A stretch of DNA of 63,723 nt, filler included, from Bigelowiella natans CCMP2755 (taxonomy: Eukaryota; Protista; Cercozoa), in the NCBI GenBank assembly GCA_000320545.1. It is 4 parts of 4 records of this genome, joined end to end, with 100 filler letters (N's around TTAATTAATTAA, not from the genome) between each part and the next. Parts side by side here need not be neighbours in the genome. Positions count along the whole stretch, not along the records: positions 1 to 30,185 come from ADNK01002270.1; 3 more parts are not named here. One strand, given 5' to 3'. This document shows positions 12,287-30,185 of this stretch, piece after piece; within the stretch, counting starts at the first letter, position 1; each line of letters begins with the position of its first letter. Below the pieces are notes generated by a model that did no database searches, was not told the origin of the DNA, and saw only the letters and a program-made list of their open reading frames with translations. Made by a program: the position numbers and the translations under genes.

Positions 12287-15200
12287 TTAATTATCGTTAT
12301 CAACGCCATCTCTGTCGTCCTCGTCAAAACCTTTGTTTTCTATGGTTGGAGCTGGAACTCTGGGCGATGGAGTGATCTGTTCACTTCCTGCTTCCGTCAA
12401 TTGAGCTGCACTTCCAACATCTAAAGGCTTCATTGTCGTAATTGTACTCGAAGATATGTTCATAGGGTCAAGACCTGGACTGCTTCGATGTCTTGCTGAT
12501 AACATTTCTTGCGTCCCTTGAGATTGCGATCGCAATCGTCTGGTGCCATAGCCTGGACGTCCTTTAATAGATCCAATTCTCTGTCGTGATTGGGGAGCTC
12601 CGACAAGCCATGATGGCCTCTCAGAGCCCTGGACAGGAACATCTAGTATTCCTCGTCCTCCATATTTACTTTCCGCATCTAATTTGGTATCTAGAGGAAG
12701 CTTAGTGTCTAGTTCCACGACCGATATACCAAATTTGGACTTCGATTTGATGCTGCTTAGCAGTGAGTCTGAATTTTTAACCTGATAAATCTCCAGCTGG
12801 ATAGCTGTTTGAATGAAGCGCTTCATTAGCTCGCCCTTTTTGGTGTAAAAGACAAACTTTTTCTGCTGCACAACATCTCCAACCACTAAAATAAATTTAG
12901 TTTTCGAGTGACCCCATGTTACAATATCTTTTAACGAATAGTTGTTTGTAATGGATAAGTCCACTGGGTGTTGAAACACGACCCCACTAGAAGAGATTCC
13001 TACATTGAAAAAGTCAGGAAGCCGGCGCAGCTGCTTTCGCTGCTCCACCGGAAAAAAATGGACTCCATAAGTACTACTTCTTTGAGTGTAAGCTATGAAA
13101 CTCCTTTTGCACGTTCCTGTGGAACACTTGGTAAGCTTCTTATATTTTTCAACCATCTTAGTCATGACGTTATTGAGAGCTTTTTCGCCTGCCACAGTCT
13201 GGAAATTTTCCTCAATAAAGGACGCTGGAATATACTTGGGAAGGATTCTTGCAAATAAAATCTCATCCGCAGGGTTGAGAACTTCCTTTTCCTCCTCATG
13301 AATTTTCAACATTAATGCACAAAGCTTAGGAAGATCCCTTTCTGAATACGACAACTTGCCTTGCATGAAATCCCTTCGTGACTGTTCGTACAATATTTCA
13401 ATAGCTACAGGGTCGTCTAGTAGTTGCTTCATTCTATATCGGCCTGCTATTGGAACTGGTAATTTGCATTGAAAAAGAAAATACTCATATCGCGCCTGCG
13501 CTCGTCGGGATCTCCTAGTACCGCGCGCTCGGCGCGTGGATCTACCCCCAAGGCTGTTTCGTTTCAAGCTTCCGGGGGGAACAGATTGCGCTCTTCTACG
13601 TTTGCTTGCTTTCTCAAGCTTCTCGTCCGATATTGCTTTAAAGTATAGACTACGATTTTTGCTATTTTCTTCCAATAGATCTCTATTGTTTTCTAAGCTC
13701 GCTTGCCATGAAGACATTACATCTAAAACGCGTCTCCTTTCCAGAAGAGGCTCGAACGCGAAGTCATTCGCTTCAAACAGACCAAAACAGGTAGTAAAGG
13801 TAAGGCCAAGTTTCTTGAACATGATATGCTCTACCTCAGCTATCAGTGTGAATGGATCGATTCCAATCTCTATACTTTTTGCCTCAGACCCAGAGGTATA
13901 AGGAAGACGGACTGTAATTGGAATAAGAGTAAAGTCCTGTAAATGCTTCAGTTCAACCCCCAAGGGCACTTCTTCAGCCTCTGGGTGAAGAGCGATGATA
14001 TGCATGAGTTTCTTCGCCTGCAAAGACTTCTCCTTTACTTCTTGAAATTGTGTATTCTTAATGGTTTTCTCCACATACCCTAACACCTCATCATGATTCG
14101 AGGGTCTAAACGACATGAGGCACAATAGCAAGAGGGTCCACCCTTCTAGGCAACGGTTCATATCAGGATGCCCATTTACCTGCTTGCAAATTTGGAGATA
14201 GAGCTCGTCTCGAATCGAAGGCTCTGATAGTAGGGCGATTCGATGTAAAGTTTTAGCTTGCTCTTCTTGTGGTTTTCTGGATTTTTTATCGCCCATGAAG
14301 CACATTACTGCCTTAAACATGTGGATGGCAAGATCATCGTTCTTACGATTTGCCTCTAGAAGAGCAGTTGATATCACAGAGTCTTCATGAGTCATCAAAT
14401 CACTTTCTTCGACCGGCTGACCATATTTAAACATACGTTTAAAAAAACCCTTTCGGTGCTTCTTTGAGAATATGAGTTTTGATGCCACGGATTCCTCATC
14501 GCTACTCATGTCTACATCACTCTCATTCCCTTTTGACATTTCATCGTCTTCTTCGACGGCAGAAAGGAAACCTTTAGCTTTCCCAGATCTAGCAAATTCC
14601 AGAAGGCCATATCGCAGCTGGATCATAGTATCTAAACTTGTTGGCTTGAATTTCAACACGGATTCAGCAAAGCTCTCTACCAGAGCTGGATTGTAGCCTA
14701 GATCGTCGGCATAAAGTTTAGGTCTGTGGGTTTCATCGCTCTTCTGAGAATTATTATCATGACTTCTGTTGGTACTAGCCTCGTGGAAAGCTTGTATCTT
14801 GTCTAAATTATCTTTTGAGCTTGGTGGCTTCGTAGTGTCAAGTGTGTAGACACTTTCCATGTCTCCTGCAGTTGTGGGAATTTGCAACTTGGGATTTCTA
14901 TTTTCGAATGGATTTCTTTGTCCTGAGTCTGGCGTGGAAGTTGACTGTCGTCTCACCATATCAAAAATCCCTTCAACAGTACCATCCTTTGATTTCATCT
15001 TATCAGAGTAACGAATCCAAGTGGCAATTGTCTTCACAGCTATGATGCATTCTTCTGATAAATTTCGAAATATTTTAGCTGCTGTAAAAAGTTCTTCCGT
15101 AGCCTTTAGCCGTGCCCTTGATCCTTTATGAAAAAGCATAATGAGATCAAGAGCATAAAGGCTCTCATGATCCAAATTTAGAAAACTACCTAAATTTTCT

Positions 15201-16830
15201 TGCAGAGGAATAACGGTTCGCATTATCGTCTTTGCCCGACCAAGCTTCATCCCAGCATCAAGCAGGTCTTTTAAGCGGAGTTCTTCAAGCGTCTCACCAT
15301 CAATTTCCATTCCCTCGATCTCACTCGCAAGTTCTTTTTTGAGCCCTTTTTGGACCAAAAGGATATTAACTTGCTTTGGAGTGAATGATTTCCAGGATTC
15401 CTGTATAGGCGGAGTATCACTTCTCTAAATTATTTAGTGGGTATATATTATGGACTGCAACATTATCCTTATTCTGATAAATAAACCTTATCTTCCACAG
15501 GGGAAAGAGTAATCAATGTGGTACTCATCCCAACGGAAGATTTTGAATCCTTCAAATATAGAATAACAAATGTAAATTTATGTATGTATGTGTAACTGAA
15601 GGTATCTGGGTTCATCAATATTTACACAGAAATAATATTTCTTTTAATTTGTTTTCATATTTGAACTTCGCATCAACAGCGATTCTCTCACATTCTTTAA
15701 ACATCGAAAAATCTTACCGCCGTAATTTCAGCTTTCTTCTCTTTAGAATTTCCTTTATCTTGTGTTTGCAAACTCTTGCTACTTAACGATTTGAGCATGT
15801 TCTCGCTATCGGTTTTACCTTTCATTTCTTTTTCCATAGATGGAATTTCATCTTTTTTTGTGATCATCTTTTTTTCTGGTTCTTCCTTAATCTTCGTCTT
15901 CGTTAGCGGCACAGCAGAGGTGGAATCTTTTGAAGATTCCTTTTTTGATTCCTAGGATTATTGCGAAAATTTATTAAGTTTTCATGAATATAGAAATTCG
16001 AAACCTATATCAACAACGGTTCTACCTCCGCCCCGCCTTTCCAAAATTTCTTCGCATTAATCTTATTCTTACTTGGCCCTTTTTTGAGCATCGACTTTTT
16101 TGAATTACTTTTCATTAATGGCACCTGTTGAGAGATATTTCTCTAGCAAATAACAGTGTAAGACAAATAAAATTTACTATGAAGTTCCATGATACCTTTG
16201 ATTCGTGTTTTTTCTTTGTTGCCCCAGAAAATTTTGAACTTTTTTTGGGTTCAGGGCTCTTACTTTTTCGCTTAGCTACTGATTTCTTCGTGACACTATT
16301 CTGCTGGATCAAAAGTGATTTAATGGCTTAGTATACGCTAAAACAATAAGAAAACCTTTGATTCAGGTTTGGATCGAGGAATCTTGAAACTGAGAGTGTA
16401 TGGCTCTCTTTTCTCATTACGTTGTTTAAGCGCATTAAGGATTTGGCTTTTTTTTGACACATTTACGTTCCCGACCTGTGCAAGTCGTATCCGTATTAAA
16501 ATAAGATACGTATCATAATTACGATATACCTTCATGAGCTGCCATCCCAGTTTAACCCCTTTTTGTTCCACCTGGCCACCAGGCGTGATCTTTCGAACGA
16601 GAACACCATTTTTGCCTATTTGATATTTATGAGGTAACATTTCAATTTCATTAAAAACAAACCAACCTGTATTCTCGAAGCTAAATCCAAGGGTTCCACA
16701 CTCGACTGTAATTACTACTTCCTAAACATATTACGTGTAAAACATCATTCTGTAAAACATCATTCTGAAATGGTGGAATTAGTTCTATTGTATCACCTTT
16801 TGATCTGTTGTGTTGACTTGGCTGTTTTCT
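12287..16830 (-). CDS. PDZ-SAM-MyTH4-FERM protein (no motor domain seen); large 3' exon 12287-~15400 plus short 5' exons
   Basis: MyTH4: LAIHMFKAVMCFMGD...IRDELYLQICKQ...GWTLLLLCLMSFRPS. FERM: FGLFEA...YGVHFFPVEQ...VGISSSGV...IVTWGHS. SAM-like: EIDGETLEELRLKDLLDAGMKLGRAKTI. PDZ split over exons: CGTLGFSF|GKNGVLVRKITPGGQVEQKGVKLGW|VGNVNV. 5' end uncertain. Confidence 0.88.
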
Positions 16831-17240
16831 ATCTACAACAAATGCGCAAAATTTATCTATTCTGTATTCTAATAGACAGCTATCGAAGTCACGTACCATT
16901 TAACGCAAGCCCCTATAACGAAGCGCTTTGGTACAACGTTAGATTAGTTCCACTTCATTCAGGTAACCTCGCCTGAGAAACGAATGGGAGCGCACAATTG
17001 ATTTGTGATCTGCGATATTTTGTTTACATAATAACCTATTTTTCATGTCGCGGAATGTAAACAACATGCATTTCAAAGGTTATGTGCCTCTGTTTGTGAG
17101 TGACTCACAACATTGCGGCGATTTTCTTCTTCCACAACAAAATCAGAAGGAAAAACTATTAAAACGGATTGCATTTGTTACTTACGACAACCTTTCAGGA
17201 CGTTTTAATGCACCGTGCAACAAATTATCCATCGCTCATC

Positions 17241-18636
17241 ATGTCCGTGAAGGGGCGGAGGGCCGAGATTGACCATCTATTCTCGGAGCGAATACCAGCG
17301 CACATAGCTGCCGGCGGACATTTGTTGGAGCCATCCGAACGGCTAGGTGCATGCACACGTTATGCATTAGCTTATTTTACGGGAGCTACAAAGAGGATTA
17401 CACATAGAGACTTTTGTACTTGAAGATTGCAATGTTTCCTCTCTGTTTAGTCCGATTTTATTGTTTTCACTTATTCGAGAAGGTAATGAGGAAGAGGAAG
17501 AAGGCGAACGCCAAATATCAAATAAATTGGAAGAAATCTCTTGATCTAATAAGGGTCTTATTTTATGTTCAGAAATAGCAGTGGAGGTAGAAGCACAATT
17601 TCGAAACATGGAGAATGCTAGTGATTCCAAGAAAAAGCATCCATTATCGTTATACTTACGGACGCTAGTTCACAATACTAACATCATAGATGAGAAATGG
17701 CACGCAGATGCAGTAGATACCCTTTGTGCAGTGTATTCAATCCAACCCGATGATGATATCAAACTACAAGGCATTTTTTGCGAAGTTGCTGCACTTGCTG
17801 CAATTGTTTCCGCAAGATCTACTTTTTATAAGGCATTAGGAGAAGACATTCCACCGTTGTCAAAGTTAGTCAACAATGTGCTAACATCCAAGACTGCTTC
17901 GCAAGATGGTTTTAATAAGACGATTTCTTCCGAAACTGTTCGAGTCATTTCCTTGTACAAGCCAACTTATCAACGGTTTGGGAAATCTGTAAAAAGTTTT
18001 AGCGGATACTATTTTTCACAAAAATCAAAGTTTACAGATCATCTCCGACGCGTTTTTTCAAATCCCGTATTCTGGATCAGTCCCGCGCACACTGTTGCCC
18101 CGTCACCAAAGGAATTGGTTTTTATTTTGCAAGAATGCTTACCCACTCTCTACATGCCGGATGAAGATGTGATGAAACTTTACATAGACGTCAAAGCGAG
18201 GTACCGTCGCTTAGCAACACGTGCTCAGATCGAAACAGTTGCTGAAGCTTTTTCTGCTGCAAAGTCATGCAGTTTTTGACAGAAAGCTCACTCCGGGCTA
18301 CGAGACGTGATTCTGACCTGGAGAATTGCACCTCCTCCTCCCAAAAGCAAAAAACTTAAGGCTTTTGGGAGGGCATTAGGGAGCAATCCCTTGAATGATA
18401 AAGCGATTGAGCTAGCACGAAACGCCTTACAGACGGCGTCTTGTGATGAAGGCCTGGTTCTTGAGTCTGCGAGTTCTTGTGCAGCTTTTATGTTGCTAAC
18501 ACAGTTAAGCAGCACTTTTGGCAAGGAAGTTCCAAAACCAATGGAGATGTTCATGGACATCGTATCAGCATTGGGCCGAAATAAACATCTAATTGCATTA
18601 CTTACAGTCCTTGGCTTATTTGCATACTATCGTTAA
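17241..18636 (+). CDS. AhpD/alkylhydroperoxidase-related candidate selenoprotein (exons 17241-17346 and 17573-18636; in-frame TGA 18277-18279 read as Sec)
   Basis: GT-AG splicing joins ...EPSERL-E-IAVEV in frame. Motif RAQIETVAEAFSAAKSC-S-F-TGA-Q-K-A-H matches AhpD CxxCxxxH with U at the second Cys. The frame stays open 118 more codons, with AhpD-like helices and a C-terminal hydrophobic anchor. Confidence 0.8.
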
Positions 18637-18689
18637 CTCATACATAGATTGTGGAGACTGTGTTCTACAGGGATGGAAAGACTATTTGG

Positions 18690-20030
18690 CCAGACAAGTG
18701 TGACAATTACAAAATGAAGCATCCATGCCTCAAAGCTGAATGTTCAGCACACATGCGCATGCTGAGAAGATTCAACATTGCTACAACATGGCTCAACCAT
18801 TCAAATTCATGCATTTTGAAATGTGCTTCATTTCTCGATCCAGCGGTCCTATTTTTCAATGGATCTGGAAAAATCCCAACACATTCACAATTCACGAAAG
18901 CTTCAGCGTGAACAATTGCAGTTGCACATCCGTTGGCACCGCGAATGATCATCATCAACACGTCGCAACGGCCACCACAGCCAGGCCCGGGCGTGATCTG
19001 TGATCCCGGATTTTCGTTGCAAAATCCATTTTGCGTGCGCATGCGTTCACATTCTAGAACATTGCTTTCACATGCACATTGTGTCTGATTGCGATGTCGG
19101 TCACACATGCCAGTGTGGGACCTTTTCGTTGCAAATTCCATGGTCATGCACGAAACGAATTGCGCTTCAAAAATTTTTGTGTTTTGTGCCACCTTTCGGT
19201 TTTGTTTCCACGTTTGGTGTGTGATGTGCAAGCAATGATGAAAATGATTGTTGTGACCGCCAGTGGCGGTGTCTGCGATGTGGGCAGAGCCCACCTGCTT
19301 CGCAAAGCAATGCGACTGCGTTGTGCGACTGCATCCTAGCAGTGGTGGTCTACGTCAGACTCGTCTTCCTGATTGAGTGCACATGTTTAGCGGGCTGTGC
19401 AATGACTCGATGGGACACCAAAATTGTGCGATGCATGGCTGGGACACAGCAAAGCTTGTTGATCAAACACGCACAAACAAGAACTTGAGTTCATGCATGT
19501 GTGTAGCCGATGCAAATGAAAACGAATGGATTGATTTTGACACAGACACAACTGAAGACAATTGAAAATGTCCGTCAAAGTAGCGGATGGATGCTCATCA
19601 TCATGGACATGCAACATCATGCATGCAATGTGCATGTTGTCGTTTGGTTGTCATTTGCTCATTTCAAAGGCTGCTGTTTTCACACCAACTGCTAATTTTT
19701 TCTCCAGCGCCATTGCTAAGAATTTTGGCATCGCAACGGATCTGGGGTACACTGAAAAAAAAGAAAACGCTCTGCATGCATGCACCATTACTGCAGATTT
19801 GCACATCTCTAGACCTAGCAGAGACAAGTGCGCATTCTTCGCACATCTGAAAGGGCATGCATGTGCTCCGATGGTCTGCAAAATGCATGACTGAAATGGA
19901 AAAACTCAACGGCTAAGTGTGCTTTGCAGAAACGAATTTGCTCCATTCAGCGAGCTAGCGAGACAGGAGACACGTTGGCACACTTATCAAACACACTGCA
20001 CATCAACAAGATCCTCAATGATAAAAAATC
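18690..20030. other. TpA-depleted island B
   Basis: Very few TA (mostly CTA/TAG), abundant TGCA/CATG/CACA, and His/Cys/Met-rich spurious ORFs in all frames. Confidence 0.8.
18700..18780 (+). promoter_or_regulatory. Candidate type II SECIS element
   Basis: ATGA (18714-18717), GCAT/ATGC and CATG/CATG pairing, AAA (18732-18734), apical mini-stem GCTGA-atgt-TCAGC and closing GA (18764-18765), ~80 nt after the stop codon. Spacings are slightly longer than canonical. Confidence 0.5.
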
Positions 20031-20038
20031 TGCTTTGG

Positions 20039-20318
20039 TCAAGATGCTTTGTAGGACTTCTTTAACTCGTCCGAAACCTCCTCTATTGTGCCTAGGCCTT
20101 CGACAGAATACCTGCGCCATACGTGTGTGATGGGAGTGACAGTGTGTGATTGGCTACTTCCTTCTATGATCGAACAAATTCGCAGCAACACATATGTGTG
20201 TGTTGGATGTGGCGAGATCGCTGAAATTGATTAGTAATGGGAATGTACGCACATCAAGAATATTCATATGTCGCGGGACACATAAGATGAATAGACAAAC
20301 CACTCCTCTTAACAAACG

Positions 20319-20353
<35 letters not shown>

Positions 20354-20847
20354 ACGCGTGCGCGCACATCAAAGGTTAAAATGTTCAGAGTTTAAAGGAC
20401 ATAATGTATACATCTTTCAATAATTAAAAAAAAGGAACTTATTCTCATATTATAGCATTTCGATAAGTTCCTCAAACATCAACAAAGCGCGTGCATACTC
20501 ACAGCCGATGGTCCGTCATAAGAAAAAGCAGCACATCGCGAAGTGTGCGCTTCTCCTTCGCCAGCATTTCCACGTTCTTCACACTCCTGTGATTTCAGAC
20601 ATCGAAGGAAAGAATACTGAGGGGAAGAGGGGGCTAGGCTCGGTGAAAATGTCGGACATATATCATGGATGCTCGCACGCCTTTTCAACAAGCAATTACT
20701 GCTGGGGTATGTTAAAGTAGAACTCTTTGCTAAAATAAGCGAGCACTGACCTTGCCTCTCGAAGCTCCCTAACTCGCACCTCATCTTCTGTAAGGCCGAC
20801 ATTTTCTGGGTTATTGTCATCAAATGGCGATGTGAAATATTATATTT

Positions 20848-20917
<70 letters not shown>

Positions 20918-22001
20918 GTATATCGGCCAGCTTGTTTCTTGCAATTCCCCCTCGTCATATGTCCTGTTGTGCTCGTCTCTCGGTCAGTTGAATAGTAGCT
21001 ATATTCGAGCATATCACGGAAGAGAGCAAACAAAAACGACCTGTGCCTATGTAAGTAAGAGAGTATCGATCGCGGGGCAGTGTTGCGGATTCACTGGCGA
21101 TTGCTGCAGCAGCAGCAGCCTCGCGGTCCTCATTTCCATCGCCTTGGACTCCCTCTGAGGGCAGAGCATTGACCCCGAAGATCCAGTCAAAGATTGCCCT
21201 GAAACAACACAAGAGCATAATTCACTCTTATTCCTCACACGCTTCGATCCCTCGCGCGGAAAACGGGAAAACATCGTATTAACCACGCGACATTAATGCT
21301 CCCCTTCGCAGGTTCGGTTGCTCCTTACCTTGTGCGGGGCGCGTGGAACGAGGAGGTGACTACCTGCTCACAGTAGCAATGCATCAACGTCAGGTGATAG
21401 TCCTCCCTCCGTGTCATGTGGGAAGTCTTAATGAAGTTGCTATGCGGAATTGTGCTCTTCTTAATGAAGTCGGCATGCATGCGGAATTGTTCATGCGGAA
21501 AGACGCCGTCGACATGCAAGCGCGGTCGTTATCAGAGGAGATTCATTGGGGTTGGCGGAGAGGCGCATCGTTCCGAATCAAACCTAGCACCGGCATGCAG
21601 TCGAAAACGGCATCATGCCAAAAGCTATTCTACGCGAGACAGCGGGAAATGCGGCGAGGAGGCGTCGATACCCACAAACACTTCCAGCCCATTACATCGG
21701 CGAATTCTGGATTTATACGGCAAAGCACAACTCAGTGATCAAAACGCGGTTTTCAACGTGCTATTGCTAATATCATCATCCCTCGTCTTTACAAGGGGGG
21801 TGGATTGGAAAACAGCTTCGCAGCGAAATGTAAGGCCCAAAACGGCTGCTCTAATCGACTCACGTGTTCTTGTGAAGTAAGCATTCGCTATTGTGTCAAA
21901 CGAAGTCGTCTCCATCAAAATCATCTTCGGGTCAATACCATGCTTGTTTACCTATCCGCGCCATAGCATATACATGTTATATGAAAATCATTCAGTTGAT
22001 A

Positions 22002-22631: not shown

Positions 22632-23164
22632 GCATCTTGTTAGCCCCCCACGTGTGTGCGGTAGTGTGCAGCATGGCTCCGTGCCGCGCAGGTACATCGT
22701 AACAGACGAAGGGAAGGTCAGTTGCGACCAACGATGCGGCTATTGAAAGTTAGTGTTCGGAGAACAGCAGATGCAAAGACCGCTCATGTATGCTCAGTGG
22801 CACTGCAAACAGGGAAGATATAGATAATGCGCCCAAGGCGCGGATGCGCGCTTGTGCTAGCAGCTCGGGGGGCAGCCGAATGCTCTGACCTTCGCCTCTT
22901 TGTGAATCTTTGCCGCTATATCACATCGGTTTTTCACGAATTCTGGGGGATTGTGCACGTCCTTGGGCCGACCCCCGCCGAGGACAACAATGGCGTCTGG
23001 AAGCGTGCACTTCGCCTTTATCGGTGACGTCGATGCGGCCAAAGCCTCTGTTACGCGCTGGTAGATGTGCGATATTGAGAAGGGGGGGGTGAAGGAAGTC
23101 GTGAAAAGGAATAGCAGCTGGTATAATTGATAATTATGTAGACATACAAGCACATAAATACACG

Positions 23165-23246
<82 letters not shown>

Positions 23247-24011
23247 GAGAGAGAGGGGGAAAGAGACGAGAGGTAAACACATATCATCTACTACACACTA
23301 TCTAAATTATGCAGCTGAGTAGACCATCTTCTCGATGTATCTTTCACTATTTAATTTGGTCATCTTCTACCTTCAATGCAGCATCAGCGCTCAGTATCTG
23401 TTACACACACACACACCCACACACACACACACACATACATATACTTTATGAGCAGGGGGTAATATGTGTACGCGCATCTACATTCCTATCATAACTGCAT
23501 TTAGATTCAAGGTGAGGACATTTGTTTCTTGCAATTTTCCGATTCCTAAACATAACCCCGCCTCAAGTGCTAGGCATTGCTGACTCTACTACCGAGTTAG
23601 GAAAGCGGTTCCAACTAGTGTCCCAAGTTTGTCCGGCCGCAGTTGTCATGGAACGATACACAGCCGAACACATGTCTCCATAAGATTAATCTCAAAGATT
23701 TCGATTGCTATGCATGGGTGCTAGCGCACGCGGTTACCTTGCAATGGCCAAAGATGGACGAGATTTGGATTCGTTTCTCAGTGAGAACGCTGCGTAGCCC
23801 TGACTTAGCACGAGCAAGATGCCTGAAACACGTTGTAAAGGCATCAACAACACAATAGCTCGTATGGATGTTGTAAGGGAAGAATGCATTTAAATGCAGT
23901 CACTTTTGAACATAAATAAAATCTTAGAAGACTACAAACCAGAAAGTAAAATGGCGCCTCCGGTGATCCATCGTTGATGTGCCGTAAACGAGGAGAGCGT
24001 TGAAGGCATCC
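20039..24011 (-). CDS. DUF218 / YdcF-like protein, multi-exon
   Basis: Exons give DAIVVLGGG...RCDIA, IVPISAGSA|HAAM...GMPLYESHASADYL, ILMETTSFDTIANAYFTR, VVTSSFHAPRT|RAIFDWIFG, ENVGLTEDEVRVRELREAR, TLRDVLLFLMTDHRL|YSVEGL...KAS*. Stop at 20039-20041. The 5' end (possible MPSTLSS...GAILLS leader) is uncertain. Confidence 0.85.
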
Positions 24012-28959: not shown

Positions 28960-30185
28960 ATGTCACAGCAGCTAGAAGAACAGCAGGACTTTGGCTCGCA
29001 GGCCGTGCAAGGGCACGAGCAGAAACAGGAAAGGAAGGGCGATACGGACGCTAAGGAAGGAGGAGGAACACCTCCACAGGCACCGCCGGGACCAGCACCC
29101 GGGATTAAGAAAGCAGATGCAGCAGCAGAGGCACTGGAGAACTTCTACGAGGCGGACGACGAGGACGTGGCCGCCGAAAGCAAGAAGGTCGTAATGGCAT
29201 TACGAGCCTTGCGACCCAGGGCGAGCAACTACGCCAAACTGAAAGTATCGATAGAATACAAGTATCAGACACATGATGTTTGGGCAGCTATCATGCAGGA
29301 CATCATGGATTACGAAGCAGACTTACCTCCAGAGTGGGCAGCTTTGTTTAGGAACGACGGGGGTCTGGGCGCCTCGCGGGGGACGACCCAGAGCACCGTC
29401 AAGCAGCAGCAGCCGGTACAGCGGAACACCCAGTTCATGTCTGTTAAAACAGCACCGGTTATGATAACGAAATACAACGGGAAAAGAGGTGAGGCAAGGA
29501 GGTGGTGGAAGAACGCTAGGAGTATACTCTGCGACTTTACCCCTAACCCCACCGAAAACGACAAGCTCAAATGGCTAGCTATAATAAAGCAAGCCATGGA
29601 CCTTTACGAGACAGGCAGGACCCGGATCAGGCAGCTAGAGAAAATACACACTACAGTTAGTGGGCTACGAGACGTTGAGGCGATAATGAAGGCTTTTGTA
29701 AATGAACAGGATGCTAACTCCCTACCCCAGGCTATTAGAAAATACAGAGCAATGATGCAGCATGAGAGAGAACCTGTTAGAGACTTTGCCACGCGCTTCC
29801 AGGATATGATCGACGAACTACATGATTTTAATTACAACACAGGTGATGATCAGGCAAGGTTTGAAGAGTTCAAGTTAAAGATAAAGGAATCCACTTACGT
29901 TACGGAGAAAGGCTACACCACGATGGAGGCAGCAGTGCAGGCTATATCCCTACGCGAGCAGGAGCAGGACCGCAAGTTTACCAGCCCTAAGGTACCTGGC
30001 ATAGGAAACATTAACGCTATTAAGCCGCAGCGAGACTGGTACAAGGACAGGGAAGGTAACCGACGTTGCGGATACTGCTCACGTAAAGGGAAACACACCG
30101 CTAAAGACTGCAGAGACAGGAAAGAAGGACGACCCAGGATGACGATCAGGCAGCTCAACGAACACTACGAGAAGTTAAAGAGAAA
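28960..30185 (+). mobile_element. gag: Ty3/gypsy-like gag ORF, truncated by an assembly gap
   Basis: Uninterrupted ORF of >400 aa. Capsid-like TKYNGKRGEARRWW...QHEREPVRDFATRFQDM and zinc knuckle CGYCSRKGKHTAKDC. Confidence 0.85.

Follow-up and report, generated by a model that had tools for sequence, protein, structure and literature searches.

A two-exon gene of Bigelowiella natans with a conserved in-frame TGA very probably encodes an AhpD-like selenoprotein

The window analyzed here is a 63,723-nt stretch of DNA from Bigelowiella natans CCMP2755 (assembly GCA_000320545.1), consisting of four parts joined end to end with filler letters between them. Its first part (positions 1 to 30,185, from ADNK01002270.1) carries, at 17241-18636 on the plus strand, what is very probably a two-exon eukaryotic gene for a 389-residue AhpD-like selenoprotein, in which a TGA codon encodes selenocysteine (Sec) within the active site Glu256...Cys268-x-x-Sec271-x-x-x-His275. 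The TGA is conserved, homology to other proteins is found on both of its sides, the genome holds a Sec machinery, a hairpin resembling a Sec insertion sequence (SECIS) lies in the 3′ flank, and the protein is related to the AhpD family. An initial annotation of the region had noted two open reading frames (ORFs) in the same frame, separated only by this TGA, and had read them as one intron-containing gene of about 390 codons that standard annotation would truncate. The layout is confirmed and this reading is supported below.

The piece upstream of the TGA was compared by phmmer with 1.84 billion protein representatives, among which it has only two relatives, both eukaryotic: P0002 (316 aa, E 1e-7) and P0003 (283 aa, E 1e-4). 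Both alignments stop exactly at the end of the query, and the overall identity with the two homologues is 25-30%. In the corresponding contigs, a TGA stands in the same motif (GCDY-TGA-RQTH in L013, SCAF-TGA-QKSH in L014) and the frame runs on past it into a second “gene” that was annotated separately by gene callers. L013, together with L021 and L022, represents metagenomic scaffolds of an intron-poor eukaryote, with an adaptin, a mitochondrial carrier and a FYVE/RabGAP gene as neighbors, while L014 and L019 are MMETSP transcripts. L019 is an mRNA with a poly(A) end, in which one continuous frame leads from Met through a single in-frame TGA and a hydrophobic tail to a TAG; L014 represents this gene too and differs by a one-base frameshift at about 1190-1210, just before the hydrophobic tail, where L019 is intact. 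Word-index protein searches, whether with the single piece or with the alignments A1 and A2, returned the same three organisms only, and locus searches in metagenome and genome collections gave no further member.

The features of the gene are as follows, P0001 being the public product of the locus and NF041238 a bacterial family profile that is discussed below:

17241..17346, plus strand: exon 1, from Met1 to the first base of codon 36, open from the ATG at 17241; its peptide shares homology with the N-terminal ends of P0002 and P0003 and is absent from P0001.
17347..17572, plus strand: intron of 226 nt, GT..AG, read from the sequence and from the junction alignment with P0002.
17573..18276, plus strand: exon 2 up to the Sec codon, containing a first AhpD-like repeat in degenerate form as well as the conserved block RAQIETVA...SCSF (phmmer, NF041238).
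18232..18234, plus strand: Glu256, candidate proton-relay Glu of the AhpD motif, 12 residues before Cys268, invariant in the three homologues and aligned with the Glu of AhpD-like ORFs.
18268..18291, plus strand: motif Cys268-Ser-Phe-Sec271-Gln-Lys-Ala-His275, found likewise in L013/L021 (CDY-TGA-RQTH) and L014/L019 (CAF-TGA-QKSH), in register with the bacterial CxxCxxxH.
18277..18279, plus strand: TGA very probably read as selenocysteine, residue 271, in the same column in three species and at NF041238 position 239 by extrapolation from the match ends.
18280..18636, plus strand: exon 2 behind the Sec codon, 118 codons and a TAA, supported by Smith-Waterman comparison with L014 and L013 and by the AhpD-core PDB matches of profile A2.
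18586..18633, plus strand: hydrophobic tail (…HLIALLTVLGLFAYYR), putative tail anchor, with a Kyte-Doolittle 15-residue mean of 1.81.
18714..18765, plus strand: SECIS-like element of form 2, in which AUGA and an A are followed by a helix of 10 bp interrupted by two single bulges, an AAA-bearing internal loop, a mini-stem of 5 bp and UGA.

Within this layout, the ORF at 17581-18279 (plus strand) ends in ...RAQIETVAEAFSAAKSCSF-TGA, its stop lying inside C-S-F-TGA-Q-K-A-H, and the same frame continues as QKAHSGLRDV...LKAFGRAL...IELARNAL...LVLESASSCAAFMLLTQLSSTFG...HLIALLTVLGLFAYYR up to a TAA at 18634-18636. That 118 codons should stay open behind the TGA has a composition-based probability of 0.0012, and empirically 2.4% of the 118-codon windows in the remaining part of the piece are open. 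The spliced read-through model comprises 389 aa, with neither frameshift nor extra stop over its 389 codons and with both exons intact. Joining 17346 to 17573 produces ...SERL-E-IAVEVEAQF, which aligns without a gap with ...VRIAISREVEAQF of P0002. Against the N-termini of the two relatives, the exon-1 peptide reaches Smith-Waterman scores of 59 (shuffles 18.9±3.6) and 42 (shuffles 18.1±3.5), which none of 3000 shuffles attained in either comparison. P0001 is only 223 aa long; because it begins at an internal ATG, without exon 1, and stops at the TGA, it is cut short at both ends. The gene is present in a single copy, no paralogue being found in the 91-Mb genome. In these analyses, exons and pieces were searched and folded apart, and the exon-2 frame was read through the TGA, with X at that codon, in our own scripts only.

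Conservation extends across the TGA, as expected if the downstream part, initially described as protein-like, belongs to the same protein. The regions behind the TGA of L014 and L013 match each other with E 7e-8, and the downstream piece of the window reaches Smith-Waterman scores of 95 against L014 (shuffles 25±4.6; 0/2000; z about 15) and 47 against L013 (shuffles 26±4.5; p 5e-4; z about 4.6). BLASTP gave no alignment of this downstream piece with either homologue, which we take to be a heuristic miss, since shuffle-tested Smith-Waterman comparison detects the homology. The B. natans protein is the most divergent member behind the TGA (19-29% identity). Conservation along the protein is highest in the block R-[AS]-[QH]-[IV]-E-T-V-A...C-x-[FY]-TGA-x-x-x-H; Glu256, Cys268, Sec271 and His275 do not vary among the three homologues, and the TGA occupies the same CxxU-xxxH column in two distant relatives. 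Further upstream lies the degenerate first AhpD-like repeat, E-V-x-A-L...C-A-R-C-x-Y-[YF]-x-A-L-G, at window 17770-17840 and at about residues 157-176 of P0002 and 137-156 of P0003.

Two other accounts of the TGA were considered and rejected. An intron that would remove it is not compatible with the residues flanking it being the most conserved of the protein, nor with the polyadenylated mRNA of a homologue, which keeps it. An alternative genetic code is not supported either: because a neighboring gene in L013 ends in TGA, this codon is a normal stop in that organism, and long ORFs of the window are free of TGA.

As to the family, the AhpD-like identity that had been proposed from the CxxU motif is upheld by several matches, which are individually weak but mutually consistent. 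With the NCBIfam profile NF041238 (AhpD_rel_CFYUT, alkylhydroperoxidase-related (seleno)protein), all three upstream pieces match and end at profile position 237 or 238, with E 0.02-0.05 each; for the window piece, residues 186-233 correspond to positions 194-237 (E 0.024, 13.9 bits). The downstream pieces of L013 and L014 match positions 267-354 (E 3e-7 and 1.5e-9, respectively), and the pieces on both sides of the Sec position are collinear on the profile. Since the upstream pieces end at 237/238, the Cys would correspond to position 236 and the TGA to position 239, the latter being an extrapolation from the match ends and the U position of the profile being taken from the family name. The curated cut-off of 175 bits is not reached (13.9 bits for the window; 12.9, 30 and 37.6 for homologue pieces) and, with scores so far below it, the protein is best considered a distant eukaryotic relative rather than a member of the NF041238 equivalog. 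No true member of NF041238 was found in 401 sampled Pseudomonadota genomes, and the comparison with this family is one with its profile.

Other matches point in the same direction. The peroxidase-related AhpD family TIGR01926 is matched by a homologue piece with E 0.015, and the downstream-piece profile A2 has the AhpD-core chains 2prr (E 0.03), 6k40 (0.32) and 3c1l (0.41) within its top eight in the PDB. When a family hidden Markov model (HMM), built by script with X at the Sec position, was run over 2761 ORFs, two ordinary bacterial AhpD-like ORFs ranked first and second. In the alignment, Glu, Cys, Sec (opposite a Cys) and His are in register with E...CxxC...H, and in one of these two ORFs it extends through the C-terminal helices. 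We take the catalytic roles of the Glu, Cys, Sec and His positions to be those of Mycobacterium AhpD, where the second Cys of CxxC is the nucleophile; Sec would occupy that very position here.

The Sec machinery itself, on which the initial annotation made Sec decoding depend, is present in the 91-Mb genome. A search that took in tRNA-Sec, SepSecS, SelD/SPS and GPx identified a tRNA-Sec (68.5 bits, anticodon TCA), a SepSecS gene, a SelD/SPS gene and, for GPx, at least four loci whose catalytic position is an in-frame TGA:

G000:C2359:80119-80457: GPx locus, in-frame TGA.
C1529:156469-156678: GPx locus, in-frame TGA.
C3163:5344-5669: GPx locus, in-frame TGA.
C3223:16521-16637: GPx locus, in-frame TGA.

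Behind two of the GPx loci lie SECIS-like elements, one with a GUGA and one with an AUGA core. The selenoproteome of this genome looks sizeable and is probably under-annotated.

The Rfam model SECIS_1 (RF00031) gave one weak match only in the whole 91-Mb genome despite its Sec-GPx genes; as the model is therefore insensitive here, a scan of our own was written, combining a pattern (AUGA, at least seven paired bases in helix 2, unpaired AA at 9-14 nt, GA) with a constrained fold. Two B. natans Sec-GPx genes serve as positive controls: the scan detects a single element downstream of each, and the window element resembles these. The latter runs from the AUGA at 18714 to the UGA at 18763-18765, 78 nt behind the TAA stop, and is the sole candidate of the scan within 18637-19700. 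Its constrained energy is -11.6 kcal/mol, or -12.3 with the GA at 18766-18767 as 3′ core. Among shuffles of the 300-nt flank, 1/400 gave an element as good, and the genomic background amounts to about four equally stable candidates per 60 kb. Elements of the same kind lie 53 nt behind the stop in L021/L013 (0/400 shuffles as good) and 84 nt behind it in L019 (7/400). The L013 element is also the one that SECIS_1 matches weakly (14.5 bits, E 4.6); on L014, the Rfam SECIS models have no match. For the window and for L014, the SECIS shape is obtained by constrained folding and not by unconstrained folding. Directly behind the UGA, no unusual hairpin is found, either of the bacterial SECIS type or of the read-through type (z about -1). 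The stretch 18637-19700 is, on both strands, rich in His and Cys codons and in short palindromes.

A hydrophobic C-terminal tail, which the initial annotation had read as a membrane anchor, is kept in all three proteins, and its anchoring function is a prediction from sequence. The hydropathy maxima fall within the last 16-25 residues in each case, as a single C-terminal segment with none at the N-terminus, and exon 1 is hydrophilic. The tails of the homologues, at the same place, are more hydrophobic than that of the B. natans protein (15-residue hydropathy of 2.57 and 2.71 versus 1.81). As it lies beyond the end of the bacterial NF041238 profile, the tail appears to be a eukaryotic addition.

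A number of observations weigh against an AhpD-like selenoprotein at this locus. On the side of the family, no piece matches any Pfam model at E<=10, including PF02627 (CMD), in searches where the CMD domain straddles the TGA and the pieces on either side were searched separately; six-frame genome scans with PF02627 and NF041238 did not pick up the locus, and the downstream piece of the window, taken alone, has no match in any library. AlphaFold2 on the upstream piece gave an unusable model, with helices only and a confidence (pLDDT) of 35, and the ESM Atlas returned no usable match and a poor model. The CxxC of the first pseudo-repeat (CARC), present in both homologues, reads SARS in the window protein, two Cys being lost. 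On the side of the SECIS, where the 3′-flank element found by our own scan speaks for Sec insertion, Rfam SECIS_1 has no match to this element at E<=10, and the 3′ core of the element is UGAG where the consensus is KGAW.

The RNA data also belong here. About 6% of one RNA run yielded 11 reads at the locus, indicating very low expression; they map upstream and downstream of the TGA as well as to 18821-18921. In this sparse coverage, no read or contig bridges the TGA and no read bridges, and thereby confirms, the intron at 17347-17572. Most read pairs have their first mate on the plus strand, which would mean antisense RNA if the library were dUTP-stranded, its strandedness being unrecorded. Logan contigs of X1 and X2, possibly DNA, cover 17555-17767, 17952-18236, 18370-18632 and 18631-18846. 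A contig of X3, which carries the same species label, spans window 17210-17700 with 8/135 mismatches in exon 1, a 177-bp skip (17345-17521) in the intron and divergence after 17700; it probably comes from the DNA of a divergent strain whose intron is shorter. For a homologue, a transcript through the TGA is seen: the polyadenylated L019 contains the TGA, the downstream ORF and the SECIS-like element. A 195-aa ORF without Pfam match lies on the minus strand at window 18707-19294; in the case of a dUTP-stranded library, the reads at the locus would come from the minus strand.

How far other readings of the locus account for these data can be weighed point by point. Programmed read-through without Sec, or a dual output, would have a leaky UGA-C decoded by a near-cognate tRNA inserting Trp, Cys or Arg, so that a soluble short product and an anchored long one arise. 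A C indeed follows the UGA in all three genes (TGA-CAG, TGA-CAA and TGA-CGG), but this follows equally from the conserved Gln/Arg codon. The lack of an exceptional hairpin just behind the UGA, and the dependence of the SECIS call on our own scanner, would suit this reading as well. It nevertheless leaves aside that the codon is the second redox position of the AhpD CxxC, where Sec is documented in bacterial relatives (NF041238; PMC1088965; PMC2398784), that the organism has a complete-looking Sec machinery and Sec-GPx genes, and that SECIS-like hairpins occur in all three 3′ untranslated regions (UTRs); we regard it as very unlikely.

Slightly less credit still is given to the idea that the selenoprotein family is real elsewhere and that the B. 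natans gene is a decaying copy, non-functional or barely expressed. Such a state would explain the very low RNA coverage, the strong divergence behind the TGA, the loss of the first-repeat cysteines and the weakest tail of the three. Against it, both exons are free of frameshifts and extra stops, the gene has kept its catalytic Glu, Cys, Sec and His together with the tail and a SECIS-like element, and there is no other copy in the genome. Ordinary termination at the TGA ending at 18279, with a soluble protein of about 270 aa and a 3′UTR open by chance, is how P0001 reads the gene, and both the silence of the curated Pfam CMD and Rfam SECIS models and the 2.4% of windows open by chance are in its favor, but it is the least probable of all, given that the TGA column and the protein homology downstream are kept in three species at 25-30% identity and that, since the TGA precedes both the CxxCxxxH His and the second, C-terminal half of the AhpD core, the product would be truncated and lack half of its catalytic domain.

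For the AhpD-like selenoprotein, then, the following mechanism can be proposed. The UGA at 18277-18279 would be recoded as selenocysteine by the Sec machinery of the organism, directed by the form-2 SECIS in the 3′UTR behind the true TAA. The protein would be an all-alpha, AhpD-related thiol/selenol oxidoreductase in which Sec replaces the second Cys of CxxC, Cys268 may resolve the selenenylsulfide, and Glu256 and His275 may form a relay. Its likely role would be the reduction of a peroxiredoxin-type partner or of hydroperoxides. The C-terminal hydrophobic segment could anchor the enzyme post-translationally in an organelle or endoplasmic reticulum membrane, with the catalytic domain in the cytosol.

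Around the gene, the upstream neighbor, on the opposite strand (12287-15358, minus), is a 1023-aa ORF that has no intron and encodes MyTH4, RA-like, FERM and IRS-type PTB domains. At 28960-30185 (plus), a Gag-like ORF with a CCHC-type knuckle (…CGYCSRKGKHTAKDC…) and no Pfam match is cut by the edge of the piece and probably belongs to a retrotransposon. An Rfam SCARNA7 match at 20291-20463 (minus; 29 bits versus a threshold of 65 bits) lies on a GT/CA dinucleotide repeat and looks artefactual; similar microsatellites are found at 334-1476, 20479-21033 and 22857-23282.

Among the selenoproteins of marine bacteria, those of the AhpD-like CxxU kind rank with the commonest. They are well known from bacterial surveys (PMC1088965, PMC2398784), including the “AhpD-like 1/2” CxxU proteins (PMC2398784), and NF041238 corresponds to the CxxU “hypothetical protein 1” of the Sargasso Sea bacterial selenoproteome (PMC1088965; table in PMC13188914). 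With NF041238, the proteins described here share the long form (357 positions in the profile), the N-terminal extension before the AhpD core and the CxxU motif, the eukaryotic pieces being collinear with it on both sides and the TGA standing where its U is expected. They differ in that the bacterial genes carry an in-ORF SECIS, whereas the eukaryotic ones have a SECIS-like element in the 3′UTR, an intron (in this genome) and a C-terminal tail past the end of the profile. With AhpD/CMD proteins at large (COG2128, TIGR01926, PF02627; PDB 2prr, 6k40 and 3c1l), they have in common the Glu...CxxC/U...H in exact register and matching C-terminal helices (…eAL..aG..d..v.e.A...A.F...tR......G), and the secondary structure predicted for the window protein, in a model of very low confidence, is all-alpha; unlike AhpD/CMD proteins, the window protein is about twice as long, eukaryotic and putatively membrane-anchored, and its Pfam CMD signal is below significance.

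Selenoprotein families of protists and algae have also been catalogued: 42 families in one study (PMC7539508), and MSP and the “hypothetical proteins 1-3” of Ostreococcus in another (PMC2375036). Like these, the B. natans gene combines a Sec-UGA with a 3′UTR SECIS-like element, and several such families are of bacterial type, but none of those listed is AhpD-like, the Ostreococcus “hypothetical” selenoproteins being compared through the published list. No eukaryotic AhpD-like selenoprotein was found in the searchable literature, with no AhpD among the 42 algal families (PMC7539508) and none in PMC2375036 or PMC3753652. The initial annotation had placed Sec-containing AhpD proteins in bacteria and some algae; the bacterial part is documented (PMC1088965, PMC2398784), and the algal part finds no support in PMC7539508, which lists no AhpD. 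As the full phmmer scan gives no relative beyond three species, the gene does not belong to one of the widespread selenoprotein families. It seems to be the first relative in eukaryotes of a bacterial family that is itself rare. With confidence only a little above even, we further suggest that it defines a new family of eukaryotic selenoproteins, consisting of tail-anchored AhpD-type Cys-x-x-Sec oxidoreductases of double length. This family would descend from NF041238 or share an ancestor with it and would have exchanged the bacterial in-ORF SECIS for a 3′UTR SECIS; it has so far turned up in three unrelated-looking marine/protist lineages, always with Sec and with no Cys form.

For annotation, the consequence is that neither end of the public gene model is correct, and that two other data sets have each broken up the corresponding gene into two “proteins”. 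A eukaryotic AhpD-like CxxU selenoprotein would add one more family to the eukaryotic selenoproteome and would be a clear example of a selenoenzyme of bacterial type having had to gain a SECIS of the eukaryotic kind; it would also point to a membrane-bound, Sec-dependent activity reducing hydroperoxides or peroxiredoxins in protists.

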